Below are positions 15,363 to 47,600 of a DNA stretch of 64,000 nt, one piece after another (the stretch's first letter is position 1; every line of letters starts with the position of its first letter). The position numbers were made by a program, and so were the translations under genes. The notes under the pieces are model-generated. The model saw only the letters and a list, made by a program, of their open reading frames with translations, searched no databases and had not been told where the DNA came from. The stretch spans positions 10,044,001-10,108,000 of the forward strand of contig OZ004608.1 of the NCBI GenBank assembly GCA_963924565.1. The letters run 5' to 3'. This DNA comes from Ascidiella aspersa. Its lineage: Eukaryota.

Positions 15363-16300
15363 ATCAAAGGAACCTGTTTTTTTTTCTCCACATCAACTGT
15401 GCAGAGCGCCGTAGTAATGAGAGAAGCTGCCTTAAAAAATTACCGACCCGTTCCCACCAATCTACTTCACGAAAATTTTTTTTTTTATTTTATTGAATTG
15501 GCGTCGGTCGCTTAAAATAACGACTGGAAACCTCTTTCTTTCTCACCAAGCTACATTCAAAAGAAATGTGGTGCCTCTTCTTTCGAAACAAACGAAATGA
15601 CGCTGTTGACAAGCAAATCGTAATCGCCTTAAAATAACGACTGAAGCTTACTTTTCTCGAAATTGTACGGAGTTGTATGCTACGTCATCCGTAACAGACC
15701 AAATCCGCAAAGTGTTCCGTGGTCATTTGATCAACGGCCGTTACATCGACCACGATTAGTATGTCCCTTTTATTTTTTATTTTTGAGAGACTTAAGGGAC
15801 CTCAGATTTCTAAATTGTATTTGAAAAGGTTTTTTGTTTACCTGCAGACCTAGTGCTCATGCTACACTTTCGTACAGTAATGCCCAGTTTTAGCAATATA
15901 TAAAATTTTTCAATGTCACTAGATGGAGTCAATATCCTGTTGAAATGTGCAATATTCAATTTAGGGCTTGATATGCCAATTTACCTCCAAGTAAATCAAA
16001 AGAAACTATAGATAATATACAATGATTAAAGTGGCATGTCGATTAGTTAACACAACGCGGTATGTCTGTTTTCAAGGTGATTTGCCAACAGTTTTCTGTC
16101 GAAATTGCGCCATACTACTCCCTAATCCTGCATCTTTACTCTGCTACGTGATTAAAGCGGTAAACCGTCTTTTTTAATTTCTGTATGGGTGCAGCGCCAT
16201 TTCTTGTCACAAACAACTTGTCTTTTTGGACTTTGTAATCTCCGTTCATCGTTATTTAGAGTTCCGGCTATTGGTTTTGGTTCAGATCCTAGGTCTAGGA

Positions 16301-23600: not shown

Positions 23601-26600
23601 ATAACCATTAATGAAACTGTTGAGATCAAAGTGGAAACGACCAACATCAAAGTCGAGGAGCTGTATAAGCCTAAAACCATTAAGCCTGGACTATCCTACA
23701 CAGCCTATGTAAGTGTCATTGCCTTATTCTTGGAGTTAAAAAGTTAGCCGCTTGATTTTATTGCTCAATAAAAATTGTTATTTTGTGTTTCAGATAAAAG
23801 TTGTAGAGCAAGATGGAAAACCACTTATGGAAGCCGACCGACTCAGTCACCATCTGGTTGTTGATCTTACATACAAGTAAGTCCTGACAATTAAAATTGC
23901 TTGATGTTAGACATAAGTTACTCAGAGGTCAGCATGCTACAGCCCAAGGGCATAATTTGCCCGAAAATTGAGATTATCCTGTTTTGTGTAACATTTTGCA
24001 CTGGGCCATGAAAGCGCGATATATTTTTGCCTATTTAAAGCAAAGGCAAAAAATAAATTTTTTCACCTACATAAAAATCCTTTACTTTTAAATTAGATTT
24101 ACCGAACTTTTCTATTCCTGTTGTGGAAACCCAAAAAAACGTCAACCACTAACTATTGTTTGTTTATAGTTATCCACGAGGCCATCGTTTTCCTGAAGAC
24201 CCTGGCACCCCTAGTCCCTGGTACCGACCATCTCGAACCGAGAAAAAAACATTCCCAATCCCCCCAGATGGCACGGTGGTTGTTAAGATTGAAGCTAAAC
24301 CTGATAACTTTACCAGCGTCAATTTCCAGGTAGGTTGCTGAATTGTTGATGTTTGAAAAGAGCATTGTTTTTTTAGACTTTAGGAAAGATATTTGTGATG
24401 CTTTGTGTTCTAAAATCCTTATTTTATCCTGGTTTAACAAGCTGCAGCTAATCTACAGTAGGCGAACTGATTTCCGTGAACCTTTCCAAAGAAACCTGTT
24501 GTTTTATTGTAACGTTATTTTAGCATTTCTAGTGTTTCATCGAAACTAAACATATGAACTATTTTATTTCCTGTTGCATTGTCAAAACCCCTGATAACAA
24601 TTAATCAATTTACAAGTGATTTTTTTTTTGTTTTCAGGCATACGTAAATGGTTCTGACAGTTGGCGAGGCATCAGTTTCAAGGTGGACAAAGCCCAGTCA
24701 CCTTCGAATTCCTACCTTCAACTGACCACAGACGACAGCAACGTGGCGCCTGGCGGCAAGGCCAGTATTACTATCAGGACAACAGAAGCTGTATCGAGCT
24801 TCAGAATTATTGTAAGTAATTGCTGGACAAAATTGGAAATGTAAATATCGGATGTTCCTGTAGGGATAAAAGTTTTGCCTAATGCCTAGTGCTCGGCTTC
24901 TATAGCATTTACAACTTGTTTGCTGATTTATTTGCTTCAATTTATTTTTATTGGGTTGAGTCTAATTTAACACGCTAAAGCCTTCACTACGGCATTAGTA
25001 AATGTAAGATTAGAATTAAAATTAGAGCATTGGGTTTTTCAAATTAAGATTAGAATTAGTTTAAATCATTTTAGTTTTTGTCAAATAAAATTAGAATTAG
25101 AATTGAGTTTTAACTGAAATTTCAACTAAAATTACATTAAATTTTTAATGCGTTTTAGCATAGCCTATGCTTTTTAGAATGTAAAAATCACCAACAAGTA
25201 GTTCCGACCACCCAAATCGTGTTTTTTTGCCTTCGCTAGATTCTCGCTCGCGGTCAAATCATGAGCGACCTGGGCTACATGGCTGCGGCGCCGATGCACG
25301 TTCACAACTACAGTTTTCCCATCACCGCTGATATGATTCCAGCTGTACAGGTGCTGGTTTCTTACGTGCGCGGCGACGGCGAAATCGTTGCCGATTTCCT
25401 CAAGCTTACAGTCAGCACCGTGCTCCGCAACAAGGTGGGTGGATTGCACATTGTTGTAGTTGTTCTTGGCGCATTGTGACGTGACAAACGGCTTGTTTCG
25501 TAAAATGCGTTAGAGCCCGTTTGAGTTAAACGAACACCCGTTGAAGGGCATACGATGCAACTTTTAAAGCGTGTTCTATTCTAGTCTGTTGTCTGTCAAA
25601 TTGTCTTGTTGTGAAGTAGTAAGCAAAACTGCGTCGATAGTAGCATAAGGAATTTGTCGCAATTATACAGAAAAAGAACACTAAATCGGTGGCATTGATC
25701 TGTTGACAACCCTAAATTAAATTAAATTAAAGTGAACTGAACCCGGTTAAGTTTTCCCGTTTTTTTTTGCCGTTTTGGTAAATAGAAAACAAAATTTCGC
25801 TTAACAATTTGTTAAACGCTGAAAAATTTGCCCGCCGTGTTTTGCCTTTTCCCGAGTCCAGAAACGCGTTGTTTTCACTGCTTGATAGAAGGCTGCAAAA
25901 CGCAAAGCGTAGAAACCCGAAAAGTTCAAGTAAAGTTGAAGTGTTTCCGTATCGGGCGCCCACGCAAACAAAAAAACCCGAATCCTTCTCTCAACTTCGC
26001 TTTCTCCCTCTCACTTTAGGTTAGCGTGTCCAGCTCGGCCACGAACGTCGACGCAGGTGATGACGTCAACATCCGAGTGCAGACGTCATCGGCAGGAGCG
26101 TACGTGGGCATGCGCGCGATCGACCAGAGCGTTCTGCTGCTCAAGTCCGGAAACGATATTTCGCAGGAGAGGGTGAGTCGACTTGCTAGTTAGGGGTGCT
26201 GTGCCTTGCGCTAGCTGTACCTTGAAAAACCTCTAGTTTTGTGGTTTTCGAACTGTTTTGTCATAGAACCATTTTGAAAATTATCGAGCCTAAGGACCCC
26301 TGATTTTTTAGGATTTACCCTGACTAACAATTATGCAACACTAGGACTAAGTTTTCATGTAAATAGTATCAAACTATCTTTGCAATATTTTAGTCAAAAT
26401 TGAAATGATTTTGCTTAAAAATCTGATTTTTTCTTGTTTAATGATTGTTGGCACCTACATTATTATCCAATAGGGCTCGGCCAGGTGACAAGGGTTCGAA
26501 AACCACTGTCCTATAGCGGTTGCAAAGTCTAGCGCAATTGCAACGCTCGGGGCTATTGTATCAATTTAATCTTTATTGGTATACTTGTTTATCGCCCCGT

Positions 26601-29600
26601 GCCGTGCGCATACTCGAGTTGCTGTTGTTCGTAAGTTATTGTAAAACCAACGAGCAATACCCGACGGGCAGTTTTACCTTGTTAATTGTTTTAAAAACCC
26701 TTTTTGTATTGAACTCTCGAATTTAATGCATTTTGTCTTTACATAGTTCCACCTGGTCCCTCTATTTAGCATTAGACAAATACGGCCATTCGCAAAGATT
26801 GTTTTGTGAAAACTATACTGTTTAGGGGTTTGGCTTGTATTTGTTGCTTGAGCTATGACGTTAGGAACATGAAAAAGTGTTTTTCTACTCGGGTATACCC
26901 CAGTTTAAAATCCTCTTACGTCGTTATTTTAAAGCGGTCATAAGGTTACACCTTTAACAAAGGACAGCGCGAATACGAGCTTTCACTTCCTCGTCTTAAA
27001 AACCCATGCACTGCTAAGGTTATGACCCCCATTTAGCTGCTTATCTGTTCTCTCGGCCAGATTACCTCATGAATTTATGACGTAAATCCGACAAGACATT
27101 TTTGAGTCGCAACAAAACGTATCTTATGTCTACTTTCCTGAGGTGAAATTGAAGAATGGCTACAATAAGGTTAACCCATGCAAATTTATGAAAAATAAAT
27201 TTGGTGTGTTTGTATATGTATCTTTTAAAACTATAAAAGGGTAGTTCTTTACGTGTGAAATACCTATTGTAATGAAATTGTCCATTTTTTTACCAGTTTG
27301 CATGGCGCTATAAAAGAAACCCATGCCCAGTGGTTGTAAAATTATACAAAAAAATTAATCCATACCGTTTTTAGCTTATAACATGGCCTCGCTCAAACGG
27401 CAACGCAAAACGCTGTTATATGCGCAAAAAATGCAAAAACGCTGCCGTTAAACGCTCGCCATTCAACAACACCACCGCTTTGTAGATCGTCAACGACTTG
27501 AACGGATACTCGAACGCCGACGGCTACTCGTCCAGCGATATCTTCTGGCGCTGGTGGTGGTGGTATCCTATTCCGTCCGGCGGTAAAGACGCCTCCGACG
27601 TTTTCTCGGTGAGTGTTGCGCCGTTTCCATTATTGGGTCGTGTTGTGCAGACCTTTTGTTTTAATTTTCGCCTACTGGAGTATCTGCCAAAGGTTACGGG
27701 TCTTTTATTTTGAAAATACGTTCCTTAAAAAATGTCACATTGTGGCAGATAAACACTGCACACACCACTTGTATTGTACCTCCACACTAAACGTTTTTGT
27801 CCAGCGGTCTCGACATTTTAAAATTCATAGTAGTTTATGCATGCTAGCACAACTCGCTTAACATGCGATTTAAAAGAGGGCGATGCGATCTTAGGATCTT
27901 CTTGGCTTGCCCTTAATTATTGCCTTTTTCTTTAAAAGCTGTAGGGTAATTGACAAAAGTTTTTTGTTTAACTAAAAATACATTGGTAATTTGAGTTTCC
28001 AGAACTATTGGAAGTAATAAATATAAGCAACAGTCCTTTGAGAGAAGTTACCTAGTTCTGACGTTAAACGTATCATTAAAATACAATTACCGTGCTGTTT
28101 GATAAAATAGATTGTGCATAACATAACATTTCCACGAATTGTAGCAAACGTGTTCACGTTTTTCAAACATATGTAATGTGTTTACAGAATAGAGCATACA
28201 AATGCGTTATGTAATCAAACAGTTCTAACTCTGTGTGTGTCTGATAAGCTCGGGGTTAGAACCAAGCAAACAGCAAGTGGTTAGATATGCACTGCCACAC
28301 CTGTGAGGCGTGTCGCAGCTCTATCTTTACAGTAATCGCACGATTATGAGTAAAACGTGCTCATGCCGAGATACAGTCAAGACACCCGCAAGCAATATAC
28401 GTGCTTTTAAATCGCTATTTACCAGCAATCCAGCATGTCTATTTCCTTGAGCTGTCGAGCTAACTCTCTCGCAAAATATCGTTCAAGATTTTTCACCGCG
28501 TCAGCGTATATTACGTTTATTAGATTGTACATCCATACTTCCAGTTATTAAAAAAATTGACCTTTGATTTTCTTTGAATTTTCACAGAAAGCCGGAGTCC
28601 TCGTTTTAACCGACGCCTTGCTGTTTAAGAGCGAACCAGAGTGTAAGTAACCTTTGGGTGTTTTTTTTTTAGTTGCTTTATCTTTAGACCGCATTGCTGT
28701 ACAGATGACCGTTAAAACCGGGCAATTTATAGGTTTTTGTCCGCTATGTTGTTACATATTTAAACAGGGGTTGCATATTTGTTTGCTGTTAAATGTAATT
28801 CTGGCGCGCTGTAAGTTTGCTGTCAAGTTTTGAACACCACGTTGCAAACAACAAATGAATTTTATATATTACTTTTGTTGACGAGAAAAAAAACCTTAAC
28901 CGCCGAGCCGTCAACCTTACAGATCTCGGGCCAGTGTTTTTTCAATTGGAGTCTAACGCCCTTGGCGGCGGCGAACAACCGTTCCTTTCTAGGCTAGCGG
29001 TCGCTGGCCCTCCGGCTGGGGCGTCTGGTGCCAGCCCGCCGGCCCCCCAACCCAGGACCCTTTTCCCCGAGACCTGGCTCTGGGACAGCGACATCACTGG
29101 GTAAATTGGCGGCGGTTGTTTCCCGTGGTGGCACGATCGTTTATGTACCGGGGTCAGTGCGGGTCACTGCCGTTTGTGGTGACTACGCGGTAAATCGATC
29201 TTTTATGAATGCAAGGTTGGCATGACGTGTGTGTATATATTTGTGTGCGAGTTGGACCCGGTGGTATCTTGGGTAAGACAAATGGAAAAAGACGACAGAT
29301 TGGGGCCAAAACCCCGCTCGTTCACGTTCCCGATCGCCAGCTGTGTGAACTGCCTTGCAGATTTCGGATACCCGTATTACCAGAATCGCCTCCTCGGTGG
29401 TGTCCCAGTCGCCTTCGCTATCAACCCTGGCAGGAGCATCGGGCCTCAGCCCGCGGCGCTTTCCCGTAAACAAGCCAGTCCAAGTGCGCCCAAGCCGCGT
29501 ACCCTCTTCCCTGAAACGTGGCTCTGGGCCGACCGAATCACGGGGTAACTAAATTGTCCGTCCACTACGAGACGGTGTTCGCTTCCTCATTGGGTTGCGC

Positions 29601-32600
29601 CTGGGTTGTTTAACCCCTTGCTTTGTCGGTCTCCGCTGTTTGATGCTACTTAACCGGTGTGTCATTTCGCTTTGTGGAAGAACCCAAGCGGCCCCTAAAT
29701 CCTCTCCCATCGCGGAAAACAAAATAAAAACAAACGAAAAACTAAGCCCGGATTCGCTTCTCGGACCTAATCCTTTAGCGAATTACAGTATCAACGCTTT
29801 CAATGGATTACTGGTCAATTTAACGTCACCTGTGGCTCTTTGTAGACTTGCGTTGGCCCTTCGCATTCTTCCAATCCCAACGAGGTCCGGCTTTTCCAAA
29901 TGTCCAGCGTATCGTTGGCGGCCGCCGCGTTCAAAGCAGCCCCGCGCCAAAACCAAGGAGCCTTTTCCCGGAGACGTGGCTATGGGCCGACCGAATAACC
30001 GGGTAATTTACATCGGTCCTGCGCTTTAAACCAATGCGCTTCGACTGCGAGTTGCGGTGGCAGGACGCGAAACTCCATTATCGAGTTTTAAGGGCTTTTT
30101 GGGTGCTTTAGCCGCTTTTTTAACGGGGATGTGTCGATTTGTATAGACCCCGATTACTATGTCAATTACCTGTTGGCCGATATCGACGATAGGAGCCCAA
30201 TCGTTCAACGCGGTCCAAGCGCCGGTCGCATCATGAGCGGTTCCGCCTCTAATGGAAGCCCCGCCCCAAAACCCAGGACCCTGTTCCCGGAGACGTGGCT
30301 TTGGGCCGACCGAGTAACCGGGTAATTTTAACGCCCCTTGCCCCGATTTCTTCGCTTTGGCTGCGCGGTTACGGTGGGTCGACGGCGAATCGCCATCGAG
30401 ACTTGGGGAAAATGTGTGTTATGTTTCGATTATACTGCGGGGTAGTTTAGTTCTATAGTGTGTTGAAGCTTGGTTCACATACGCCTGGCGTTAAATGCTA
30501 ACGTCATTCTCAATTTACGCGCATAACACGTCGGCTGCGTTAACGGCAAATTTTCTCCCGAAGGTAAACTTGAAGTACCGACGTTTTTCGTTTAACGCAC
30601 AACGCGTCTAGCGTGAAACAACCATTACAATTCAAGTAGCATAGTGAGCCGATCGGCATTTTGAGGTATAAGTTGGAAGTTGGTATAAGTTAGGTTTCGG
30701 TTTGCTTTTGTAGATTTCCCGATCCGCTATGCGTTCGGCGGCGGTGTTCAAGCCTTTGCCGTCGACAGCCAAATAGTGGCCAGACAGCCCGAAGCGTTGC
30801 GGGGCCCTGCCCCGGCCGCTCCGGCCAATAGCAACCCCACGCCACGGACCCATTTCCCCGAGACCTGGCTGTGGGACAGCGGTCTTACTGGGTAACTTTG
30901 CTGGCTACTCTATGGGTGTGCTTAGAAAACTGCTTCAAATGCTGTTTTTTTTCTCGCAACGGACTCGCATGTGACCTGGAGGTGTTAACAACGCTATATC
31001 CGCTTTTTCTTGTATATTTAGTAACCAAACATGGGCCCCTTGAATCCTTACTGTTACGAGGTTTGCCCTTTTGTCACTATTTGCCAAGTTTGTCCAATAG
31101 GCGTTTCCATCCTAATATTTTTGGCCCTTTGCGCGAAAATCAAGAATTTGAAATGTACAAACATCGGTTATTGTCGAAAAGACAAACAGATAATCAAAAG
31201 AAAATTCTTTGTCTGTTTTCGTTTTTAACCTGTCTGGTCTTTTTCGTCAATTGCGCTCAAATTTTCGTTAAACAGTCGCGTCAGAAAAGCGGCAAACAGC
31301 GTAGCGAATGTCAGGCCTAGATTTTTAAAGTCGTTATTTTCGACCCGAAACACGCAGACGGGGATTATTACGGAGGCGGAGACTATTTGTTCGAGATACA
31401 GTTTGACGGCGGCGATATGGAGGCTCCAGTAATAATGGCGGACTCTGATGGGGAGAACGTTGAAAGCGAGCTACCGCAAGCTAAAAAAATCCGCTCGTTT
31501 TTTCCGGAAACGTGGCTATGGACGGAGGGCAGGACAGGGTGAGATAAGACTGGGGACAGGTTAAGGGGGTTTATTTATACTTCAGTTGCAGTTATATTTT
31601 TTTTATTTTGGATATGCATTTTCAGTTTTACAGATTATTTTTTTAGCGAGCCATTTTTAGCGAGCTCGTGTTGGTCGTCTTAGGTTTTAAGCCTAAAGTG
31701 GTTCTATTTTTTAAGACTCTTAATTGTTTTGTTTTTAGAAGCCCCTTTTGATAGTTCAACTTTGTGAGCTTAACCTGATCTATATCCCTCGCCGGTTTCG
31801 TGAGCCCAGTTCTATCAGTATAAAGTTTTAAGCCAAATCATTTCCACTTTTGGATAAAACTGTACCAAGAGATGAGGCGTTGTGTGTAGTTTTACCCACA
31901 AGAGAGTTGCAATATTGTGGAAGTCCTTTATGGTGAGCAAGTTACGGGGATCTTAAAAAAAGTGAAAAACAAAAAACTTCACGCACATAACAAGTACCAA
32001 GGTTTGGAGAAAAGTCTTAATTTTATGAATACACGCCAGGACTGCCAGTCAGCACACTGCGAGGACCGAATTTGAATATGCCCCAAATCGAATCGCAGCA
32101 GGCAGCAATATATCGCTCTCAGCTGTAGCGCTCTAGGTTGGTGAACGAAAGCGGCAGAATCGAGAGGATTGGCCGGTAGTGATCGTAGCGAAATTACCAA
32201 TTCGCAAACGTTAGAATTCGAATGGTGTGGTGCCAGCGCCAAGGCGACCAATTGTCAGGAAAGAAAATTGACTGAATCACCGCCTTTCGATTCCATGGCC
32301 ACCAACTTGACGTGAAGGCTGCGCTCGGCTGAACGTGTAAAAGGCACACCCATATGTATTTTAACGCTATTGAAATGAGCTTGCCTGTCAAATTCGCGTT
32401 AACAGAATATGGCCTTGTTCAAACTAGCGAGTTACTTCCGCCTACGTTCACGTGAAATGCTTTACAACCCGCGATAAATTATTACCTTTTGCAATACGTT
32501 GGTGGTGGTGCAATGACTGGCGTTTTCTCCATATTACGTTGTATAAACCCGGTTTATTTCGGGGAATGCACAGATACGGTTCAATTATATTTGCGTTTAC

Positions 32601-35600
32601 GAATGAATAACAATAAAATTAACTGATCGAATTACCAAACGTATATGAATTTAAGGTACCACCTAAAATGTTCTAGTTAAAAGTTCACTTAATGGCCATT
32701 TCAAAATGAGATAAAAATAAATACTACAAATTAGGCGATCAAATGACATAATTTTAATGTTCACCAGAATGGTCGCTTCTTAAAGCAGCTTCGAAAAAAA
32801 ACAACCTTTAATTGACCAAACGACATACCCAACGCAAACGCAACTCAGTAAGCAAGTTTTAAGTCGGCCTTCATTCAATCCAGTTCCGGTGATGCTGTTC
32901 AAAGGCAGCGTAGCAGCAGCTGGCCCCAACAGGGAAGCGGCCGTAGCGGTTACTGACGATACCGTACACGAGGCGCCTAACCCTAGGTCCTACTTTCCGG
33001 AAACTTGGCTATGGAGCGGCGCTATTGCCGGGTATGGCGCCCCCGGAACGATTGCACTGTTGTTGCATGATGCCGAGTTTCGGCGTTAAAGCGATTTTTT
33101 TTTAAGCTGAGGCTTTCGTTGGTTGCCGATTTATGAAGAAGTTTTGTTTTGATATTTTCAGCTGTTTTCCTTGTTTCTTGTGCTGTTTGTATTTTGTTCA
33201 GGACGTACGCTTTTGCACGGATCCCAAATTTTATCCCAAATGGTCATAACTTAAAAGAATGGATTTCGCTTACCTCTGATAACTCGACTTTCGTTTATTT
33301 TAGTTAACCTTCGAAAATCAGCCTTTTCCACAACGGTATAACACTAAAACTTCCTAAAAACACACAACCAACACCGCGAGAGAAAACTAGAGGAAGGCAA
33401 AACTTGCTATATCTCCCGCTAATACGCAACGCAACGTTGTAAGCGAAACTCAGTCGTTTGCAATTGACTGAACTTTGCTTTGCCCCTCGCGCAGATGTAG
33501 ACATCTACCCGGTTTTCGCCATGGCCGAGTCGGCCAATTTTGACTTGGACGACGGCAATAACGCCCTGAAACGCGGCCAGGCGTCCGGCGGCGCCCAGGC
33601 CCCCGCGCCCCGCACCTATTTCCCCGAGACCTGGCTGTGGGACCACTCGCTTACCGGGTATATAACAAAAATAACATTAAAATCACGCCCTCACAATGGT
33701 GTAGCGGCTGCTGTGCATGACTTGCCGGTTCTGTGCGTTACTTTTGTGCATTATATACGTTTTTATTTGACGGTGGGAATGTTAACGCTATACTATACGT
33801 ATAACTGTTAATTTGCACGTGGTGTCAGAGATGGCGTGCGTTTTTACTGTTTTTATATGTTTTTTCGAATTTTGTGCAGTGTTGCAACTGTGGCACCCAC
33901 GCTGTGAGCACTGTTTTTTTTGTAAAAATTTGTACCACAAAAAAATAAAAAAAAAATACATTTTTACTTGAAAAAAAATTAGTGAAATGCGATTGTAGAA
34001 TTAATATTTTACATTCACAAAGCCTTAAAATAAGCATATATAACCCAAATAAATCGAAATTTTGAAGTAAATGCCCCGCAACAAACAACTAGCTTGTTTG
34101 ACGGCCAATTGCAACAAACAACTAGCTTGTTTTGACGGCCAAAATATTGCCACGGCAGATGCCTACCCCTTCGTTTACGACTCGTCGGAGAGATTGGGTG
34201 ATTTTTTTGACGCCCTGTTCCCTTCCATGACCGTCTCCTCGGCCCCAGCAATAACCCCGAGAACCCACTTCCCTGAAACCTGGCTCTGGGAAAACGACCT
34301 GACCGGGTATGTCCCCCCCCACCCCCCACACACACACTATCGCCCGTTGAACGTTCTGCACGAAATCACCCCCGTATTGCGTCGCCATTCAAATATTCGA
34401 CGTCGAAATTGTGTAGTAGTCGGTCGAACATTTTCACGAGTTAAAACGAGCATGCCACTTCTACCAAATCACACATGTTCTTCGTCGTTGCACACTTTTG
34501 CGCCCAACCGTTTGTTTTGTAAAGATTGTTTATGCTGATCGGTTGAACAGAATGCCTTTGTCCATTCCTCTTGCAAAAAGGGTAACAAAATCGATCGTTT
34601 TAGGTCTTATAAACCAACAGAATCGCGCACTCAGAATATACCCAATATTTTGAACTTTTTCAGCAGGATTTAGTATACCTAGAAGTCTTCTTGTCTAATC
34701 TAACCTAGCCCTGATGTGTCCTCACCTCCTGAGTTTAACCCTAAAGCCTTACAACAGGGGCAGTGACGTTTAACCTTTTTTCTCCGTGTGTCAGTTGACG
34801 ACTACCCGGTTTACTTTATGATGGAAGCCGCGGAGGCCGAGTTCGACTCTGACGTAACAATGGTGGGCAATTCCGCTGGCGGGGCGGCGCCCACACCGAG
34901 AACCTACTTTCCCGAAACCTGGCTTTGGGACGAAGGCTTTGCCGGGTAAAAAGCGAAACTGCCTGTAGCGCGAATGCGGAACGAGTAATCAGTAGTCTTG
35001 TTTCTTACTAGCGACAAGTCCTCTTCCCTTTACGTCGCTAATTTATTTTCATTCCAAATCGAAATCCGCTAATATTCGTTAGCTCTGCAAACACGGCTTT
35101 CCAATCGAGCATTTTAACGATTCACCCAATGCTAATTATAGTTTTCCGGACATTTTATTAGAGTATTTTTCAATATTAGAGTATTTTTCAATATTAGAGT
35201 ATTTTTTTTTCAAGTTTCCAATGATTTCCTCGCATGCGCAAGCGTTACTTCTGCGATTTTTCATATAGAACAACCCAAATTTTGCACGATTTAATTTCTT
35301 GTGCACGTTGTAATTTGCGGTAAAACGTTTTTTTGCAGCTCTTTCATGATTATTTTGGAGAGGTTACCTTTTAGGTTTAGGTTGTGGGAAAAAAATTATC
35401 ACAAAATAATGCATTCTCTGCGGATTAAGGCAAAGGTTCTTGAAACTGTGACGACCTGGTGCGTCGTTTTAATTTCCTAAACGGATGAGTGTGAACAAGG
35501 CCAATCATTAAAATATATATACGATTTATCTGCAAAGTCAAACAAAATGTGGCGCCACCGACGACAGGCCGGGAATTGTATATAGCTTAGCTTAAAATAA

Positions 35601-38600
35601 ATCCAACCGATGTCTGTCTTATCTCTCGTATGGTTTAAAAATTCCACGATGACGCAAGTGAAGCCGACCGCTTCTCTGCACGCCTTGCACCAACGCTTGG
35701 TAATGGCTCGAAGCGATCGCGATCCACAGGCAATCGCGATTTGCGGCTTGACAAGACCACCTTCTCTTTTTAGACCGCTTTGCCATTGAGCCTGGCTTTT
35801 TTCAAATTCAGTCGGCCCGTTGAAGATACCGCCTGCAAAAGATGCTTCTTTGGAAAAGAGGGTGGCCAAAGAAAGCGGCTGCTGTTGAAATAGTCATAGG
35901 TTACTGTATTTTTGAAATGGACAATACGCAAAAAGCAAGGTAAAAATGGGATTCTCCTCTTTGTTGTCATTGCTCAGTTCAGTACCTTTTTAAAAACATG
36001 TGCACTTGCGAACTTCCAATGAAAAAAAAGTGAGACCTGACCTTTCGAAGCAAACAGGCCTTGAAAGCGTCATCAGATCGCTACGTTTTCGTGGAAAATC
36101 CCCGATTCCCCATGTCGAGCAAAACAAATCTGTCGCGCGTTTCGTAACTCTCCAATATTTTTCTTCGATTTTTGCCTTCGGAGAAGACTGACGAAATTTC
36201 TTTTCCTGGAAAAGCCCAAGTATTCAGTTTTAAAGCGTTTGCTGTTTTGTTTACCTATACGACTGTATTCAATCCCAGGGCTCTTTTCGCCTTTCGCCCG
36301 TTCTCGGATGATGTTGGGAGCCGCTCCGGGCATTTCAGGCAGATTCCAGGCCCCTGCTGAACCCCGGTCGCATTTTCCCGAGACCTGGCTGTGGCAGGAC
36401 GGGTTGACCGGGTAAAGCAAAAATCTAACTGTAGATTTTGCAGATTAACGCTTGGAGGGACAAAAAATATCGAGCACGTGCAGAAGTATGTAGCATTTTG
36501 TGAATGATTGACGAAACGTTTTGCAAACCGTTCACAAAATGCGAGCAATACTTCTATTATGTGCTTCGACATTCCTTCTAGGAATAACATAGCATCCTCG
36601 CTCTTATGTATGTAGACGCAAAGTAAGTAGATCATTTAGCAGTCACACATAGTTAACGCTCATGCTTCAATACAACCGCAACTGAAATCCCTTTAACGCC
36701 CCCCCCCCCCAAAAAAAAAAAAGAAAACCACCACGAACTTTCCTTAAAGAGAGGTCTGATGCTTCTGATTGCAGTCGAAAACGTGGTCCTCTATTCGATG
36801 TCGCGGAACTTCGGATTGGCGCAAGACGCCCAACTCGACTTTGTAGGTCCAATCGTGGGCGCTTCGCCAATCGGTAACGCCGCACCACCCAAACCGAGGT
36901 CCCACTTTCCCGAGGCATGGCTCTGGGACAGCTCTCTTACAGGGTAATCCCCGGCATTTCCAATCCAATCAAGAACTCGCGCACCGCATGACGTCATACT
37001 CCTGACCCCCACCGCCTATAGTCACTGTGGAGGACTAACTTACATCATCGTCTTTTGCATTGCAATGCGGCTCTGGCGACGTGTCCTGACGCAATTTACA
37101 AACGAGTTGGCCAAGGTCGTGAGTTCGAATCTCACCGCAGAAAAGGCGTTTGCAAATCTAAATTCCTAACATGCAATTGCTACGAAATGTCTTGAGTCCT
37201 TGAGTCTTGCCACAGAAACAGTCATTTTTTTAATTTTAAAATTTGAATATTAAATATCGGTTTAAGCAATTGCTACGAAATGTCCAAGGTCGTGAGCTCG
37301 AATCCCACTGCAGACCAGTCGTTCGTAACTCTAAATATCGGTTTAAGCGATAGCTACAAAATGTCTCAGGTCGTGGGTTTAAATCTCACCTCTTAGCATA
37401 GTTATTTGCAATAGGTAACCTGAATGTCCTTGGTTCGTGAGTTCGAGTTGCAACACCTGCTGATTTATTGTAGACGTAATATTACATAAAGTCGAACCGC
37501 TTCAAATTTAGATTCAAATTGCAGACGAACGATATGGGCGGCCGAGATATGGGCTGCCGAGATATGGGTCCAGTGGCCGTGTGGGTATGGCGTTTCCGAT
37601 GGCAAACAGCCGCATACAATATAAGGCGCTCGCGCCTCAATCGTTGGACATCGGCGGCTTTTATCCCACTCCGGCTAAACCCAAACCGAGGTCCCACTTT
37701 CCCGAGGCATGGCTCTGGGACAGCTCGCTTACAGGGTAATCCCCCGGCATTTCCAATCCATTCAAGAACTCGCGCACCGCATGACGTCATACTCCTGACC
37801 CCCACCTCCTATAGTCACTGTGGAGGACTAACTTACATCATCGTCTTTTGCATTGCAATGCGGCTCTGGCGACGTGTCCCGACGCAATTTACAAACGAGT
37901 TGGCCAAGGTCGTGAGTTCGAATCTCACCGCAGAACAGTCGTTATCTCTAAATTCCTAGCTGGAGAAATTGCTACGACACGTCCGAGTACGAGATTTGAA
38001 ATCTCACTCTAGTTTAGACCAGTCCTTTGTAAATTAAATCCAAATCTCGGTTTAAGACTTCAAGCGATTGATACCAAATGTCCGAGGTCGTAAGTTCAAA
38101 TTTCACTGCAGACCATTCGTTTGTAACTCTAAATCTCAGTTTCAGCGATTGCTACAAAATGTCTGAGGTCGTAAGTTTGAAAAAATTGCGATATTTATTT
38201 GCAGCAGGTAACTCTGTTACACATACCTGTCACTCCGTCATGGCGTTGGTTCGTGAGTTCGAAATGCCACGCCGACGACTGATTTATTGTTCCTTGCTTG
38301 TACGAACTGCGACGAACGGATCTAGGATATAGCTTATAGGCCGCTATAGATGTACTACTATATACAAAGTCGAACCCGCTTCAAATTTCGATTCAAATTG
38401 CAGATAAACGAAAACGATATGGGAGGCCGATGTTTAGGTCCCGTGGCCGTGTGGCCACCAGCCGTATACGGTTTAAGGCTCTCAAGCCGGCGTCGCTGGA
38501 TATTGCCCGTTCTCCCACTCCGGCTAAACAGAAACCGAGAACTCATTTCCCCGAAACTTGGCTGTGGGACGCGTCGCTAACCGGGTAAAAGTCACTATAT

Positions 38601-41600
38601 GTCCTGGACTACATGTCCTGGACTGCCGTTGTTTTCATTCAGTGAAACACCGTCAACCGACTTGTAATGTAATGGCAGTAACCCACTCTAACACGTCACT
38701 CACTCACTCGCTCGTACGAAACAACCTTTTCCATTGTCATTTATTTAACAAACGCGTCGAAAGATTGCAAGGCCTGGGCGCATTAAAAAAAACTGGCACT
38801 GGTGTAGAATCCTACCACAACGTTGAAACATTATTAAACCAACGCAGAATATTCGGGATAGGGTGTCGGATGGGATTTGGGTGAGGGTGGGTCTAGTATT
38901 ATTATAATTATTTAATAGCATTCCTAACTCGAATACAAAACGACTTGCTAACTAGTTTCTGCTGTAGTTGTTGGAGAGTTTAAAGAGGCCCTTCAGTCCC
39001 TCAAAATACTTTTCAAATCACTTCGCAGTTCGAGTAATTAAACCTACAGACAGCTGACGAGCATAAAGACCAGCTTGAACTTTGATTACACGTGCGGAGA
39101 GCCCGAGGGTGGGAATGTTTGCTGCAAGAAAGCAAACAAGCGGCATATCAAGTATCAAACCCGCATTTCAATCAACCAAAATGACGCGTTGGGCAGATAT
39201 AAAGCAGGGGTGGGCAATTATTTTTTGAGAGCGGGCCTCATAAGAAACAGACAATGTCTTGGCAGGCCGTGTCAAAAAAGTGGACCTCGAATACATATAT
39301 AACGTACGATTCCTTTTAAAAGAAACTATAAATATCGTTGTCTAGACAAGCTTGTAAGAGTAGGAAAAGGTGCAGATGCTTTACAAGAGTAATGTATTCA
39401 ATAAAAATTCCGGAATCAAAAGAAAAAACATGTAAGGTTTACTTTTGCCTAAAAAAGGTATATTGTGGATAAGCCGCGGTTCAGATTATATTGCTTGGCT
39501 GGCCGACGTTTTGCCAGGTCTGAGCTAAAGGGTCTACGTATTAAATACCATTCATATTTGAACGTCTTCAGGACCTTTAATTATAGGTTCGAATTTAACG
39601 CCGTTGCGTTTCGAAGGTCGAAACAAAATTGTAAACTATTATTTTAAACCACGGCTAAATCGTTCAAACCGACGAACAGCTACCACTGCGTATCGATGCC
39701 ATTTCAATACTGTGCAGGTTTTATCATTTATTTTTTAATATTTTACTTTTTTTCACGTGCATGCTGCATGCTTACCTCGTCGCATGAAACTCTTTTGTTC
39801 ACTTTTTCCGCAATCGCCTTCGGGCTGTTTTTGTTCATAATAGATTATTATAAGCTTAGGTAAATAAATATTTTTTGTATAATAAATATTTTTTGTATGT
39901 AGTTGAGATTAAATGTAGTGTATGTGCTTACAACCAAGGTAGGATTTTGGAGATAAAGTAAGATTCTATATAAGATAGCATATGTCACGTCTCGTTTTTA
40001 TGCCTGCTTTCCAATGTTATTTGCCCAATTGCATTCCCTTGAAATATTTTTAAAACGTTTACTTTTCTTTAAATGCTATGCTTTGTAAATCCGCCCGTAT
40101 GTGACATGCGATTTAACTAAAACACTTAAAGGGATTAACTAAGCAGGCATAAAGACGGACAGTCAAACTTAAGAGTCACGTCGTGAACTTGTAAAATTGA
40201 CTTTGCTTTTTGCCCGATTTAGCGCCGACGGTGCAGCGACCTTCGACACAAAGGCGCCCGACACTATTACGTCGTGGATCCTGAGCGCCTTCTCAGTATC
40301 GGACGAGTACGGGTTTGGACTCGCCGACACTTTCAAGGTGAGTAGTCGAGTAATCGAGTAGGTGAGTAATGGTAAGTTATTTACAACTTGGAATAGTTGC
40401 TGTTCATTTAACTTGGAATCAAAAACATACTTTATTAGCCTCAATCATTTTTCGCGGTGACCTAAATACTAAACGTAAGTATAACAGTCATGCTTTGGCG
40501 ACCAAATTCACTTCCCTAAACTAAATGACTTAAAACACAAATAAATTATAGTGCTAATTAGTTTAAATTCAATGAATATAAATCATGTTTCGTATTGTTT
40601 CTGCGGTTTTATAATAAGTTCTTTACAACTTGGAAAATGTGATGATTATTTCGAGACAAAATTTATTTCCTTGAAATCACACAAAAAAGTTTCTAATAAA
40701 GACTGGCAGACGTTTCTCGAACTTTCTTCACCCGCCGCAAATTGCCTTTAATCCGCCAAGGTGTGTTGCCAAAAATTTCATCGCCCTCTTATTTCTTTCT
40801 TGAAAAACCGCAAGCGTTAAAACCTCGTATGCGCTGATAAAATTTAAAACCTCGGGCGCTCATTCAATTAGCCGCTGTTTATATCAAGAAAGGTTGGAAA
40901 GCTTCAAGCGTATGCCAAGGGGAACTACGTTACGGCGTCATCGGGAGCTTTTGTCGTGTTACACGCTGATTTATTTTCCCAACGCGTATTTGCCGCCGAT
41001 TCACCTCGCAGTAAACATGTTGTGGTGTGGCGTCGATTTATCATCGCGTACACAAAAGGTTGCCGGCGCGTGTTTTTCTCAATTGTATGCCTTTTGCGTC
41101 AAAAGTGCCCTTTAAAGCCACTTGAAAGACGTGCGAGATGAGCCTAGGCCTTTCTTGCCGCCGTTGTTGGAATTTGCTTAAAGTCCAGTAACAAAGGGGT
41201 CGCTTTGGTTTTTAAAGCAGCCAAAATTCTCCTTGTTCCTGGTGTGGGTCATACGGAAAGTTGTTTTTGATTTTAATAACTAATCCTAAAACACGCGTTG
41301 ATTACGACACGTAAAGTAGTTGCCACACCTGAGCTTCAAATTGGAGAAACCTTCGGTAGAGTTCCAAGTTAAAGTTATATTTTCAATTTTTAAAAACAAG
41401 ATCACTGTGTCTAGCGTTTTAAAAAATGCGCTAAAAGTCCTTTTGTTTCTTTGCAGAGTTGAACGTTTTTTATTATATTTTAGACTTTACGAAACCGAAT
41501 TGATTGGTCGGGCTTTAAAACACAAGCTGGTTTGAAAGTCGGCTTTGGCCGATTCACCAAAACAAAGACACCGAACTCATTTGTTCTTCCTTGCAGATCA

Positions 41601-44600
41601 CCGTCTTCCGTGAGTTCTTCGTGAGTCTCAACCTTCCACTTCGCATCACGAGGGGTGAAGCGATCATCGTGCAAGCGACCGTCTTCAATTACTTCGACAC
41701 ACCGCAAACAGTGAGTCGTTCGTTGTTTTTCTGGTTTGTTAACCCGGCTTTTTAGGAGCCGCTGTACGCTATGCTTGGTCTCTAAGACAAAACAGAGAAA
41801 TAGCGCATTGGGTAATGGCGAAGGTATGCGAGAAATATCGCTACCCTTTATAAGTATCTGTGCTAAAGAAATTAATGCTATAAAAATAACCACAATGTTA
41901 CCCAACATGGTCGAATATGTCTTTAAGTAAATTAGATCAAAATACATTGATACGACCTATAATGTATCTAGCACATCTGGTCGACAACCAATTTCACTTT
42001 AATCAATTAGATTTAAACGCTTGATAACAGGTTCGTGCTCTTAGCCGAAAACCACTAAAACAATAACAACCCCCTACCAAGCTTAAAAACAAAAATTCAT
42101 ATATAGGTAAAGCATTAAGTGTTTTTTGTTGGGACACTTCGGCTTCAGACGCCTTACAAAAGGTCCAAGACCTTTTGTACAAGTGGATCGAATGACCACA
42201 CCTGGACACTTAGAAAAGAAAAAAACCTCTCAAAGAAAGTTGAAGTGCACTCGGCTTGTGACGCTCCATGGCACATGGTTGCCAAAAAACGCGGGTGCAG
42301 GCGAGCGGAAACACTTCGAAAGCCATATGCAATTAATTGCAGCAACTGACATGTTGCTGTACTAGCAATCCCACACTACTAGTTTCGTGTGGAGTCGTTG
42401 ACGTGCTCACAGCAAAGGTCTCGGTTGAAACTGATGTATTTCTTTGCCTTGTCGACCGAATCTGTATTCCGAAACGCAGTGTGATTATATTTGATTAATC
42501 TGATTCGAAATCACCACTACCACTATATATATACACAGTTTTTCAGTCCCGGTACTTTAGTCGTACAACAGAAACGAAACCTCATAGCCGAATAACCAGC
42601 CATCTAACGATTTTTCATATTGTTATTCTTTTTGTTAATTCTGCCTAGTACGCAAAGTAATCCATTTACCTCGCCTCGTCCGCCAAAAACGAGCGCACCC
42701 GCTGCCTATGTCCTTAAGTTTTACTTATTCTACATGTAGCATAGGCCTTTCATACATTTTTACGTTCTAACTATTGAATCTGGAATTAGAAGCATACAAA
42801 ATGTCGTCCCCTTTCAATGGTCAAACCAACCCTTAAAATATTCTATTCGGCCTTATGTTAATCAAAGCACTTTAATCAATTCGTAACAACACAAAAAAAC
42901 TTCTGGCGGCTTTTGACCCCTCGCCCCTGACCCGACCACTTTCTCTTCACCCAGGTCCAGCTGACCCTGAGCCAGAGCGCCAACTTCGAGTTGATCACCC
43001 CCGGGAATGACCCGATCGCCGCCGGCCCCATGCGCACCCTCTATGTACCCAGCAACGGCGCCGTGTCCGTCAAGTTCCCGGTACGCATGAACAGCCTCGG
43101 GGAAGTCCCGATCACGCTGTCGGCCGTTGCCGAGCTGGGCCAGGACGCCCTTACCAGGGTCGTATACGTCAGGGTAAGGATTCGATATTTATGCTTCGGA
43201 ATATTTTTTTATATATTTTTTTTCTTTTTGGTGTGTAGTTCGTTCTTCAATTTACTTCGATCCAGCATACCTCTCTCCTACTGACAAATTTTAAGTGGTT
43301 ACTTGTGAAATTTATCGTTAACATTACCAGGGTCTTGTACGTCAGGGTAAGGATCTAATGTTTGTGCTTCGTTATATTTTTTTTATTTTTATTACTTTTG
43401 GTGCGAGGTTCGTGCTTTCCCCTTTTCTATCCGGCACAACTGTCCTCAATTGTTGAATTTTTACTGTTTACTGGTAAAATTTGCCGTTAAAGTTTCTAAA
43501 GTCGTGCTTAATAAGTCGAATATCTAAAACTCTCATCGAAAGCTTTTTTTCAATAGCTTGTCTGCATTTCTGCGTTTTCTGTTTTAATTTCTTTAGCGTC
43601 TTGTTTCCTTAAAACTATACTTTGAATTAAACCTTTACCTAAACTGTCTTGTGTATAGTAGTTAAAGTGACTATAAGCGTTTAGTAATTTAGTTAGTATT
43701 AGACCAGGGGTTAAACTTTTATAGCGGTGTATTTATGGCGCACCAATTAAAATCTTGCTGGGCTGAAGAGTCGAGTCCAGTCCCCATAACAGTATAACAC
43801 GAATCAAACTTAACCTCAACTTTCTTATTTTGTGCCGTTCACAACACCTTCCTTAAACGTCCTTTGTATACACAGCCGGAGGGCATCCAGCAGTGCTATT
43901 CCTCCTCGATCCTTGTAAACCGCGAGAGCGACCGAGATCCGACCAGCACCGAAGCCCTTGAGATCCTGATTCCAGTTGGAATCGTGCCCGGGTCCGAAAA
44001 GGTCAAGCTATCTGTTTACGGTAAGCCTTCGCGACCCGGCATCGGTGTTCAAGATTTTTTTTATGAGAAGGGTCGGTTTTTAGGGTTTGGCTTTTGTTTC
44101 CACTTGGGATTTTTGTTTACGCTTTCTACATAGATTTAAAGATTGGCTTTTGTTTCCGTTGAGCAATTTTAAAAGATCTCGGTTATTAAATCGCTCCCCT
44201 CAAAACTTCTTTAAAACACAGACCTGTTTTATAGGTTTATATTTGTGCAAGTTTTGTGTTTTGATTATTACATATTTAAAATATTGTTTCGACTGATACA
44301 CTGGTAGCGTCTCCATTAAACTTCCATCACCAACAAATAGTCCCAAAATACGGAGTTCCCAAAGTCAAAACTACAGAAGACGCCCAAACGATCTAAAGCA
44401 GCGCTTTATTTTTATCCTTTTCAATTTTTTCACATTACATTTTTTAATTTTCAATTCTATCTTCAGGCGACATACTGGGAAACACGTTAAGCAACTTGGG
44501 CAACCTGCTTCGTATGCCTGGCGGTTGCGGCGAACAAAACATGCTCGGGTTTGCTCCCGACGTCTTCGTCACCGACTACCTGAAGAAGGCGGGCAGACTG

Positions 44601-47600
44601 GACGCCGCCACCGAGGCCAAGGCGAGGAGCCACATTCGTACCGGTTACACCAACGAACTCAAGTAGGTGTTGTTTATTTTTATTGGATAACTACCAAGTG
44701 TATTTAGTAGCTTGGGTGATTCGCAAATTATTTAAAAATAAGGTAATTAGACGAATCCCATTTAGAAATCATCTGATTTTTGTTCTCTTATTTGTGTTTT
44801 TTTGTCGGTGTTATTTAAGGCGCTTCGCAAGCTTGCTATAAAAAATAAATTATCGCTTTTCATTGAAACGAGCTTATCTTTCTACCCCCTTGTTTATTTT
44901 CGGGTTGCCGATTTAGCGTTTTGTTTCCAGGTGTGAATTTTCCTGGCGTATTGTAAAAACATTGGCCCACTCTGTCGATTAGCTTTTTCGTTTTACTTAT
45001 AACATAAAAAATAAAACTTACGAAACGTTAAACCCGGAAAATAGATAATACAAAAAGTGATCGGTGGCAAAATAAAAAATCATTTTGAAACAATCAACAG
45101 ATAAAAGTCATCTATAACTGGTGTTATTTCACAACAATTTTTAACCGACAATAGCCGTTTAGGGCTACTTTTCCTACCCCCAATATACCAAAGCTAATAT
45201 ATTTTCTTAGAACAAAAAATAACTTATTGCAAAAAGACAACTTTAGTACCGATAAACGAAAGTACTTTTCGAAGCCATCGCCACCTAGAAAAAAAACTGA
45301 CACTGCAAAATCCGCAAATTAACAAAATACCCTTTTCACTAACACTCTTTTCACCTGCAGCTACAAGCACGGGGACGGATCGTACAGCGCTTTCGGCAGA
45401 GGCCAAGGCAGCACCTGGCTCACCGCCTTCGTTGCCAAGTGCTTTATCTTCGCGCACAAGCTCCAGGCCGACTACGTGCAGGCCAAGATCATCGACGAGG
45501 CCCTCGACTTCCTGATAAGCATGCAAAACTCAAGCACTGGCGAGTACATGGAAAAGGGCAAGGTCTCGCACAGGGCCATGCAGGTACGAACATGCTATGG
45601 ACTGTAGACTATGGAGTTGCCTTGCATGCTATTCGGACTATTGCAGTGGTTCTCACTTCTCAACCTTATTCACCTTGCGGACCCCTTTTGCTTCCTTGAA
45701 ATAATGGAGGATCACAGTAATGTTTAAAGCTGTCCAAATTGAACTTTCACGGTGCAATAATTGCATTCTTACATTTAGTTCGGTACTCGTTCTAACACTA
45801 GATGCTAGATGCACAAGCTGTCATCAGATTTATTAACAATAAAATTTATCAAGAAAAACAGGCTCCCCCTACTGTTAATTTATCAGCCTATGAAATAAGA
45901 GAAGTTGTGATTCCTGTAAACCTTTTCACATACCCCAGTTTGACAACCAACAACCTAGACGTTTATTTAGAGGTGCCAAACCCCGGTGTGTTAAACATTG
46001 TTACGATTTTTTTTGTTTTTTTCTGTCCCTAGATTAACGCGATACATTGCTGTACCGATTAAATCTCCGTTAATATTTGTTAACCTTGGTTAGGTCAATA
46101 TTTTCCATATTTGCCACTAGCCTAAAATAGCTCAAGTTTATAACGATGTTACCGCTTTACATTTTATCTACCCCCTTCTACGGTTTGAAGGTGAACATTT
46201 TTAGTCAATGCCCAGTTGTTTACTTTCAATAATACATAATTGTATAACGTATATACATGACAATCACATGTGTGTTTATCGCACACCATTGACTTTGATT
46301 GTGGCCCTTAACACAATTGAAATCCTATTCTACAGGGAGGAGTTACGAAAGGAGTCACAATGACTGCGTACGTTCTGGTCACCCTCACTGAGACCGCCTT
46401 CCCCTACAAGAACAAGGTAAGTTGCTGCTTCATTAATTGTGTCGCCCAAACATAACAAACTTGACCTTTTTTTCCAATTGTATTTTAAACTTTTTGTTGC
46501 ACACTGTTCTATATTCCGCCACTTTTTGCAGCCATACAGAAAAAGCCGAAAAAAAACCTTGATATTAAACTAATTTTAACGCTCCTTTTGAAATAATCTG
46601 CTCTGTATTTTAAAAAATATTTTGAAATTAACTTGTCAAAGGATGTGTGATTACAAAGGCTGAAAAAAGCGGCCGTGACGAGCGGTTCACTTCAAAATAG
46701 GTCCTTAAAAGTAAAACCTGTTAAAAAGAACTTCCTTCCAACGGCATTGTTGGCTGAAATCACAATAAACACTCTTTCCCGTTTTCAGAAAGTTGCCGAG
46801 TCCGGTGCCAAGGCCCGCGCCTACCTGGAAAGCAACTTGCAGGGAATCAGGGATGACAAGTACGCCCTTGCCATCGTCACTTACGCGCTCACCGTGTCCG
46901 AAAGCAACATGGCTGGCCAAGCGCTCGGCTACCTCAACGCTCTTGCGTCTGTCACTGGTTAGTGGGTTGTATAATGTATACTGTTGGATGGACTGTTTTC
47001 CAGGGGTGCTTGTATGTTCGACAAATAGGCAAATCCACAGTCACAGTGTTGTGTAGTGTTGTATTGGGGGTTTAACTTAATGTGTGGAATACATTATGCA
47101 AATGATTTTTACTAAAAAATTTTTTTACTTGACAATGCTGACGTTTAACCTTCTATTAAAATTTGTTAAAAATAGAAAACGACAAAATTTGAATTTATGT
47201 AAACATTATGCGAGTCATTTTTACTATGAAATTTTTCACGTTACTTTACTGACGTTTACCTTTTCATTAAAATTTATTTAAAAATATTGACGTCGAACAT
47301 TTTTTATTTATGTAAAAATACTCCATTTTCTAACACGACCAAAACACCAGTATCTGCTTAATGCTTTAATTGTGAGGTACTAATATGTAATGTAGGGCTG
47401 TGTTTCAAAATGTCTTCAAAACCGAGATGGCATGACACTTCTCTCCACCAGGTGGCCTTAAGTACTGGGAGGCTGAAACCCCCGACGCTTCTGTTTACAA
47501 GAGCGCCTGGCGTCGTCCCTACTACCAACCTCCCACCAACGAAGTTGAGATGACCGCTTACGCGCTGCTCACTTACGCCAGGATGGACAACGTCGCCGCC

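Follow-up and report, generated by a model that had tools for sequence, protein, structure and literature searches.

Can a single gene for a thioester-containing protein (TEP) carry alternative versions of the short bait region that proteases cut, and do such versions differ enough in chemistry to respond to different proteases? The question is raised by a 64,000-nucleotide (nt) stretch of the genome of the ascidian Ascidiella aspersa (GenBank assembly GCA_963924565.1, contig OZ004608.1, positions 10,044,001 to 10,108,000 of the forward strand; hereafter the window, with coordinates counted from its first letter). Here a multi-exon, CD109-like TEP gene of the A2M/TEP superfamily occupies roughly 21.6-52 kb of the + strand and harbors, at the place of the bait region, a tandem array of 14 homologous exons that we call cassettes. 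A first-pass annotation had divided these cassettes into several chemical classes and read them as a repertoire of protease specificities. Charge is the only class that proved robust, with two strongly acidic, five strongly basic and seven near-neutral cassettes. We consider it rather probable that the cassettes act as one-at-a-time trigger modules that differ chiefly in charge, which would likely give the isoforms a graded protease selectivity.

Fourteen tandem bait cassettes in a CD109-like gene

The motif F-P-E-x-W occurs on the + strand exactly 14 times, from 29063 to 38547, and a looser motif scan of 28600-40230 recovered no degenerate extra copies. An open frame of 47-108 codons leads up to each motif (14/14 frames open), and 12 codons after the motif comes a donor of the form GG/GT(A/G), the slash marking the exon end, with GTAA, GTAT or GTGA as the only intron starts. 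These donors are unambiguous; the acceptors are predicted, each having been chosen among in-phase AG sites for the quality of its pyrimidine tract. Predicted in this way, the cassette exons measure 148-211 nt, have lengths of 1 mod 3 throughout, run from entry phase 1 to exit phase 2 (14/14), and open with a codon that, completed by an upstream T, encodes Tyr or Phe in all 14. The whole array spans 9.7 kb, with introns of 144-1345 nt between cassettes, and (given the predicted acceptors) shows the tandem homologous exons with equal phases at both ends that characterize mutually exclusive arrays. Its limits had been placed at 28923-38584, and these are indeed the first base after the AG acceptor of cassette 1 and the last base before the GT donor of cassette 14. 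Profile matches in the 308.6-Mb assembly (75 contigs) fell in only these 14 places (14/15 candidates). Since the last A2M_BRD exon covers 26020-26190 and the cassettes sit after the end of this domain and ahead of position 7 in the A2M profile, they occupy the place of the bait region.

In each cassette an aromatic N-terminal stretch is followed by a variable core, then by a Pro/Ala/Ser spacer and, as the fourth part, by the invariant R-x-x-F-P-E-x-W-L-W. Across the cassette alignment R, F, P, E, W, L and W are invariant and the P before the R is nearly so; the R at -3 and the F at 0 are present in 14/14. A profile of the 14 cassettes aligns to R-x-x-FPE[ST]WLW in the solved C5 chain and matches the A2ML1, A2M and CD109 chains at equal profile positions. 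By this alignment we identify R-x-x-F with the alpha'NT plug of the A2M superfamily and P-E-x-W-L-W with the conserved motif after it, the invariant R and F corresponding to A2M R732 and F735. The alpha'NT region threads a channel in native superfamily proteins, in which R732 and F735 of A2M are conserved residues; mutation of F735 or of the channel gives collapsed protein, and retraction of the plug upon bait cleavage has been proposed as the trigger of conformational change (PMC9352918). As a plug residue, the conserved Arg is part of the framework and not a bait cleavage site, so the first-pass annotation was justified in setting it aside when describing the baits. The Pro/Ala/Ser spacer that it had described is also borne out, with P, A and S filling 83 of 168 places in the last 12 positions as against 102 of 406 elsewhere (Fisher p 3e-8). 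Aromatic residues crowd the opposite end (49/168 in the first 12 residues vs 22/406 elsewhere, p 1e-13) and are present in every cassette. Three short R-Y-G repeats open cassette 13 (37527-37570), of which one is retained in cassette 14.

The identity of the gene follows from its domains, searched exon by exon without a joined spliced model. MG2, A2M_BRD, A2M, TED and A2M_recep (PF01835, PF07703, PF00207, PF07678 and PF07677) succeed one another in this order on 9 of the 10 exon-bearing open frames, MG2 with 32.1 bits, slightly below its cut-off of 32.8, on a partial exon. The thioester motif GCGEQ has one copy, at 44523 on the + strand. Roughly 100 residues past the thioester, as is the case in CD109 and insect-type TEPs, the His of ..KVSHRAMQ is aligned with the residue at the catalytic position, likewise His, in mosquito TEP1 (4lnv), human CD109 (9fx2) and A2ML1 (7q1y). 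A His at this position permits reaction of the thioester with hydroxyl groups, as in the opsonins C3 and TEP1. With the thioester exon as query against 1.84 billion representative proteins, the closest full-length relatives were Styela clava proteins named "CD109 antigen-like" by NCBI (61-65% identity in the thioester exon, ca. 38-43% across all matched exons), and no protein of A. aspersa itself was among the matches. The assignment to the CD109 subgroup rests on the source names of these best matches and is provisional to that extent. Frame translations display an R-N-R-R in the receptor-binding-domain exon (~50100-50150) and a hydrophobic tail closing the last coding stretch (51900-51976), both seen at that level only and together reminiscent of the furin site and the glycosylphosphatidylinositol signal in human CD109.

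Charge separates the cassettes

Differences in composition were examined by pooling the variable parts, without the first residue and the P-R-x-x, and shuffling the residues among cassettes 20,000 times. The observed variance in net charge density was matched by none of the shuffles, and those of basic and of acidic residues by two each. By comparison, shuffles reached the variance in aromatic content 16,449 times, in Pro+Ala+Ser 14,843 times and in Ala+Val 1,960 times. The charge signal does not hang on single cassettes, as 1 shuffle matched it without cassette 14, 2 without 13 and 14, 7 without 14 and 6, and 396 when all four extremes were dropped. K+R range from 0 to 15 per bait and D+E from 0 to 11, basic and acidic content are negatively correlated across cassettes (-0.58), and the resulting net charges are given in array order in Table 1. 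Array order was also considered as the main cause of charge and was rejected, the lag-1 autocorrelation of 0.25 being reached by 8,716 of 100,000 permutations. In 54 baits of full-length homologues, a set that includes near-identical Styela isoforms and thus has a smaller effective n, the net-charge quartiles are -4, -2 and 0; a net charge of at least +5 is found in one of these 54 and in 5 of the 14 cassettes. Strongly basic cassettes are therefore unusual for the family.

Against this background the acidic and basic classes of the first-pass annotation stand. Cassettes 6 and 10 are strongly acidic (net -9 and -7), and cassette 10 has no K/R apart from the Arg at -3 that the whole family conserves, while cassettes 13 and 14 are basic (net +7 and +14), though the cited KRKR and RSRGR both belong to 14, which has 15 K/R and three dibasic pairs. 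The remaining classes fared worse. The Ala/Val-rich words VAAAG and EAAVAV are present in cassette 7, but as a class they are weak (12 of 33 residues, binomial 0.015 uncorrected for 14 tests, with cassette 5 also reaching 12, of 43), and an elastase-like group built on them is not supported. Likewise, the aromatic clusters VFF, YPYY, WPFAFF, YAF and DFFD do occur in cassettes 1, 2, 3, 5 and 9, but the aromatic stretch is a feature of all 14 and defines no chymotrypsin-like class. The consensus R-x-[KR]-R, on which a convertase-like class would depend, is found in 0/14 cassettes. The cassettes thus differ in the P1-type residues they offer by charge, weakly by Ala+Val and not by aromatics; of the proposed repertoire of protease specificities, the charge-based split survives (cassette 10 offers no K/R P1 site, cassettes 2 and 3 no D/E) and the three other classes do not.

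Selection on each cassette and recent duplication

Comparing the cassettes pair by pair at their seven invariant codons (R, F, P, E, W, L, W) gives 637 comparisons, of which 294 show a synonymous difference and 0 a non-synonymous one. Two of these codons encode Trp and cannot vary, and the five variable ones are near saturation. Given that only synonymous differences are seen at these codons, each cassette has been kept by selection. Nucleotide similarity among cassettes is restricted to the 3' 30-81 nt, except in the pairs 12/13 and 13/14, a pattern better explained by long independent purifying selection on each copy than by gene conversion. Between cassettes 12 and 13 the similarity covers the 3' end and the intron that follows it (84% over 516 nt, 36887-37383 vs 37679-38181), and between 13 and 14 the whole exon and acceptor region (69% over 272 nt, 37471-37739 vs 38347-38588); the similarity of cassette 13 to both neighbors is consistent with a chimera produced by unequal crossover.

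The variable cores, unlike the plug, evolve fast. Within cassette 3 the GGC codon of R-IVGG (29917-29918) has CC at its first two bases in a contig from a DNA run and in both covering RNA reads. With both changes on one haplotype, Gly becomes Pro, and this look-alike of a zymogen site is then not fixed in the species.

Transcription and probable one-cassette splicing

Transcription was followed in one RNA run of the same species, about 6% of which was read, giving 54 reads on 28580-34579 (cassettes 10-14 lie outside this interval). All 54 place their first mate on the - strand, the orientation that + strand RNA gives with most stranded libraries, and the gene is transcribed from the + strand. 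Eight of the reads have a loose end before 28587 whose consensus is 27580-27609, the end of the preceding exon, which confirms the splice into the constant exon upstream of the array. Cassettes 3, 4 and 9 have 1-2 reads each, and the bin 28980-29179, which holds most of cassette 1, is without depth.

This thin coverage, and the fact that annotation gives each of the Styela clava relatives only one bait, might be taken to mean that few cassettes are functional, the remainder being unused or recently silenced. We regard this as highly improbable, as 14/14 frames and donors are intact, no degenerate remnants are found and the invariant codons hold 0 non-synonymous as against 294 synonymous differences; at a sampling of ca. 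6% of one run from one sample, the absence of reads means little.

With phase 1 at entry, phase 2 at exit and lengths of 1 mod 3, the reading frame is kept by one cassette (or by 4, 7 and so on) and shifted by none or two. Frame-shifted transcripts with zero or two cassettes would presumably be lost via nonsense-mediated decay, and from exon phase we infer one cassette per mRNA and up to 14 isoforms on one scaffold. Steric exclusion is unlikely at intron lengths of 144-1345 nt.

Proposed protease selectivity and its alternatives

By analogy with A2M and CD109, a protease cut in the bait would free the plug from its channel, upon which the protein would change shape and its thioester could capture the protease or a nearby surface. 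Cleavage, plug retraction and thioester exposure are in this respect likely the same mechanism as in human CD109 and A2M, and PMC12927315, in its available parts, describes CD109 as working through bait, shape change and thioester in the same way, with membrane release as part of the process. The premise of the first-pass annotation, that bait sequence sets the triggering protease, is borne out in print for A2M, where replacing the bait by Gly-Ser abolished cleavage by the tested proteases and inserted substrate sequences restored cleavage by chosen ones (PMC8267569, in the sections accessible). If the same applies here, basic baits should favor enzymes of the trypsin-like and dibasic-specific types, the acidic bait that lacks K/R should evade these and stay open to Glu/Asp-specific ones, and all isoforms should remain sensitive to proteases that prefer a hydrophobic or small P1.

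Several observations weigh against charge-graded, one-at-a-time baits. The shuffle test behind the figure of 0/20,000 counts cassettes as independent, though 13 and 14 are recent duplicates. Rival acceptor sites exist for cassettes 6, 8 and above all 11, in which the alternative at 36279 would, as read from the translation, cost three basic residues and lower the charge. Among the 54 RNA reads on 28580-34579 no joints were found, and no read or contig joins a cassette to a constant exon. RNA reads fall in introns too (depth 3-5 at 28769-28832, 5.4 in the bin 31780-31979), which suggests unspliced precursor or other transcription in the sample. A crude search for docking/selector complementarity yielded only A/T-run words, the best of which found partners in 4 of 13 or 14 introns, a level that shuffles equalled or almost equalled. 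Because every cassette keeps aromatic, aliphatic and small residues, the protease spectra of the isoforms probably overlap, perhaps heavily, rather than exclude one another. A2M still functions when its bait is Gly-Ser, and constraint on bait sequence is accordingly weak as a rule (PMC8267569, in the same sections). Of 37 differences in the 6 kb with RNA reads, 7 lie in cassettes, 6 of them (in 5 codons) non-synonymous and 1 synonymous. Finally, in local alignments of the variable cores with 91 homologue baits, 0/14 scored above their own 40 shuffles.

The last three points, to which the recent duplication of the basic cassettes 13 and 14 may be added, also speak for another account, namely that tandem duplication, followed by nearly neutral drift in a linker that need only be flexible and cleavable, left the charge classes as a side effect, the library being mostly redundancy. 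Cores that are unalignable between cassettes at the nucleotide level and without likeness to homologue baits, a changed residue in 5 of 6 polymorphic cassette codons, and an A2M that tolerates Gly-Ser in its bait (PMC8267569, as far as its available text goes) are what it can point to. What makes it distinctly unlikely in our eyes is that acidic and basic residues segregate far past chance (none of 20,000 shuffles, or 396 without the four extremes, and the correlation of -0.58), that frames, donors and plug residues are intact in 14/14 cassettes while synonymous change is saturated, and that the lag-1 autocorrelation of charge is weak (0.25), so that the classes are not mere blocks of neighboring copies.

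Cassettes could also be used one at a time, as we propose, with their diversity serving ends other than the choice of protease, such as directing the native protein electrostatically to surfaces, whether microbial or host, differing ligand avidity, differing self-conjugation of bait lysines by the thioester, or tissue-specific tuning to the animal's own proteases. Cassette 14, with +14 in 44 residues, looks more like a polycation than a typical bait when set beside the homologue quartiles of -4, -2 and 0, and the catalytic-position His permits an opsonin-like reaction with hydroxyls. In addition, the thioester can conjugate bait lysines, according to the accessible text of PMC8267569. We hold such roles to be unlikely, as the variable part lies exactly at the protease-sensitive bait site of A2M and CD109, upstream of the plug, and engineered baits show that sequence alone can set the protease that triggers A2M (PMC8267569, same text).

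We thus retain trigger modules of graded protease selectivity as the favored account. A bolder form of it would see in this gene a chordate-lineage, probably membrane-anchored CD109-type TEP with the largest bait library in the literature searched, whose charge-sorted, class-selective tripwires make up a splicing-chosen innate "protease-typing" repertoire, the polycationic baits answering trypsin-like or dibasic-specific enzymes and the K/R-free acidic ones Glu/Asp-specific, often microbial, enzymes. We put this forward tentatively and consider it doubtful. Should the charge-sorted cassettes be used one per transcript and differ in the proteases that trip them, the gene would provide a compact natural counterpart to engineered selective A2M baits, and it would mean that splicing, and not gene duplication alone, serves to diversify a CD109-type sensor among the close invertebrate relatives of vertebrates. 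In any event, 14 natural bait-plus-plug modules on one scaffold are a test set for bait chemistry versus protease selectivity. As it stands, a design already known from snail, scallop, fly, shrimp and tick is seen here in one more lineage, with a slightly larger array; mutually exclusive bait exons, and the idea of a protease range widened by them, have already been published, and what this array contributes is the charge partition with its unusual polycationic baits. Our literature search, with supplements and figures outside its scope, found no tunicate TEP/CD109 bait-exon array and no chemical classes of bait cassettes.

Comparison with known systems

Dscam-type clusters, which PMC2685406 mentions, likewise consist of tandem homologous, mutually exclusive exons that supply an isoform library in an immune-related gene. 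They differ from the present array in that no docking/selector complementarity stood out here, and exclusivity is explicable by exon phase alone.

The closest parallel is BgTEP2 of the snail Biomphalaria glabrata, where 12 mutually exclusive exons over ca. 30 kb, confirmed by transcripts, are variable apart from a strongly conserved C-terminal part (PMC7016707, in the text parts available, as for all statements from this source below). Both genes have tandem mutually exclusive exons for a bait-like region, of variable length and composition and with a conserved C-terminal end, and a role in widening the recognition or protease repertoire has been proposed for BgTEP2 as well. Unlike the transcript-confirmed snail exons, the 14 ascidian ones in 9.7 kb are known from genomic sequence and belong to a CD109-like scaffold. 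A charge partition is absent from those text parts on BgTEP2, and Figure 3C and Table S4 of PMC7016707 may show comparable chemistry. The same source lists 8 predicted variants for BgCD109 and 3 for BgA2M, 6 mutually exclusive exons for CfTEP of the scallop Chlamys farreri, 5 isoforms for Drosophila Tep2 and 6 variants for shrimp A2M-2, with challenge- or pathogen-dependent isoform responses in CfTEP and shrimp A2M-2. BgCD109, CfTEP, Tep2 and shrimp A2M-2 thus have alternative bait-region exons too, but fewer of them, and in protostomes; the text parts on them contain no account of chemistry cassette by cassette.

Human CD109 and A2M (PDB 8s3o, 9fx2, 6tav) share with the ascidian gene the bait, alpha'NT plug, FPETW and GCGEQ, and CD109 alone of the two also the catalytic-position His. 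They differ from it in having one permissive broad-spectrum bait per gene as against 14 alternatives, and overall identity to the solved chains is low.

Searched against short proteins, the cassette profile gave 56 weak matches, all through the conserved end. Cassette 14 alone as query gave none, an uninformative outcome since other matches have its conserved words. The profile search also brought up contigs on which two cassette-like open reading frames lie, as well as a protein from Batillaria that has two within a single frame; tandem bait exons are therefore widespread. Likenesses seen by eye between cassette 10 and the bait of Styela P0006, and between cassette 6 and that of P0005, were not supported by shuffle-controlled alignment.

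Coordinates, paralogues and neighboring genes

Table 1 Exons of the cassette array and its constant surroundings (positions in the window; net charge is that of the bait)
Feature	Position	Strand	Length (nt)	Net charge	Remarks
Constant exon upstream of array	28588..28642	+			ends ..SEPE plus 1 base, phase 1; from sequence, acceptor confirmed by 8 RNA reads
Cassette 1	28923..29100	+	178	-1	AG acceptor; GG/GTAA donor
Cassette 2	29361..29544	+	184	+5	no D/E; acceptor predicted
Cassette 3	29846..30002	+	157	+6	no D/E; polymorphic R-IVGG
Cassette 4	30147..30321	+	175	0	two RNA reads cover 30182-30193
Cassette 5	30714..30891	+	178	+1	12 Ala+Val
Cassette 6	31358..31538	+	181	-9	acidic; alternative acceptor 31382 would keep it acidic
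Cassette 7	32884..33031	+	148	-2	Ala+Val 12/33
Cassette 8	33495..33657	+	163	-3	
Cassette 9	34159..34306	+	148	-3	
Cassette 10	34795..34945	+	151	-7	no K/R in bait proper
Cassette 11	36228..36411	+	184	+5	least certain acceptor
Cassette 12	36775..36943	+	169	-1	FPEAW variant
Cassette 13	37525..37735	+	211	+7	three RYG repeats
Cassette 14	38404..38584	+	181	+14	KRKR and RSRGR; 3 dibasic pairs
Constant exon downstream of array	40223..40337	+			opens with 1 base; A2M domain start, PF00207 E 2.3e-8, profile positions 7-51
Thioester exon (GCGEQ)	44466..44663	+			PF07678 TED match E 2.7e-16

PF00207 marks five genomic places, this gene included. Among the four remaining ones, the 10-kb stretches around them show an FPETW-like motif at one only, in single copy. 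There, on the contig labelled C3 (~33.291 Mb, - strand), a paralogous A2M-domain gene has a single FPETWMW exon after R-R-R-H-R, which is more like a processing site of the complement type than a bait.

Beyond the 3' end of the TEP gene, open frames at 54825-58202 on the + strand resemble a thrombospondin type 1 repeat and a domain of the LamG/pentraxin kind. The Styela clava isoforms P0009 and P0154 have long C-terminal extensions, and tblastn with them did not reach 54825-58202. Upstream of the TEP gene, another multi-exon gene lies at ~6400-15400 on the + strand.

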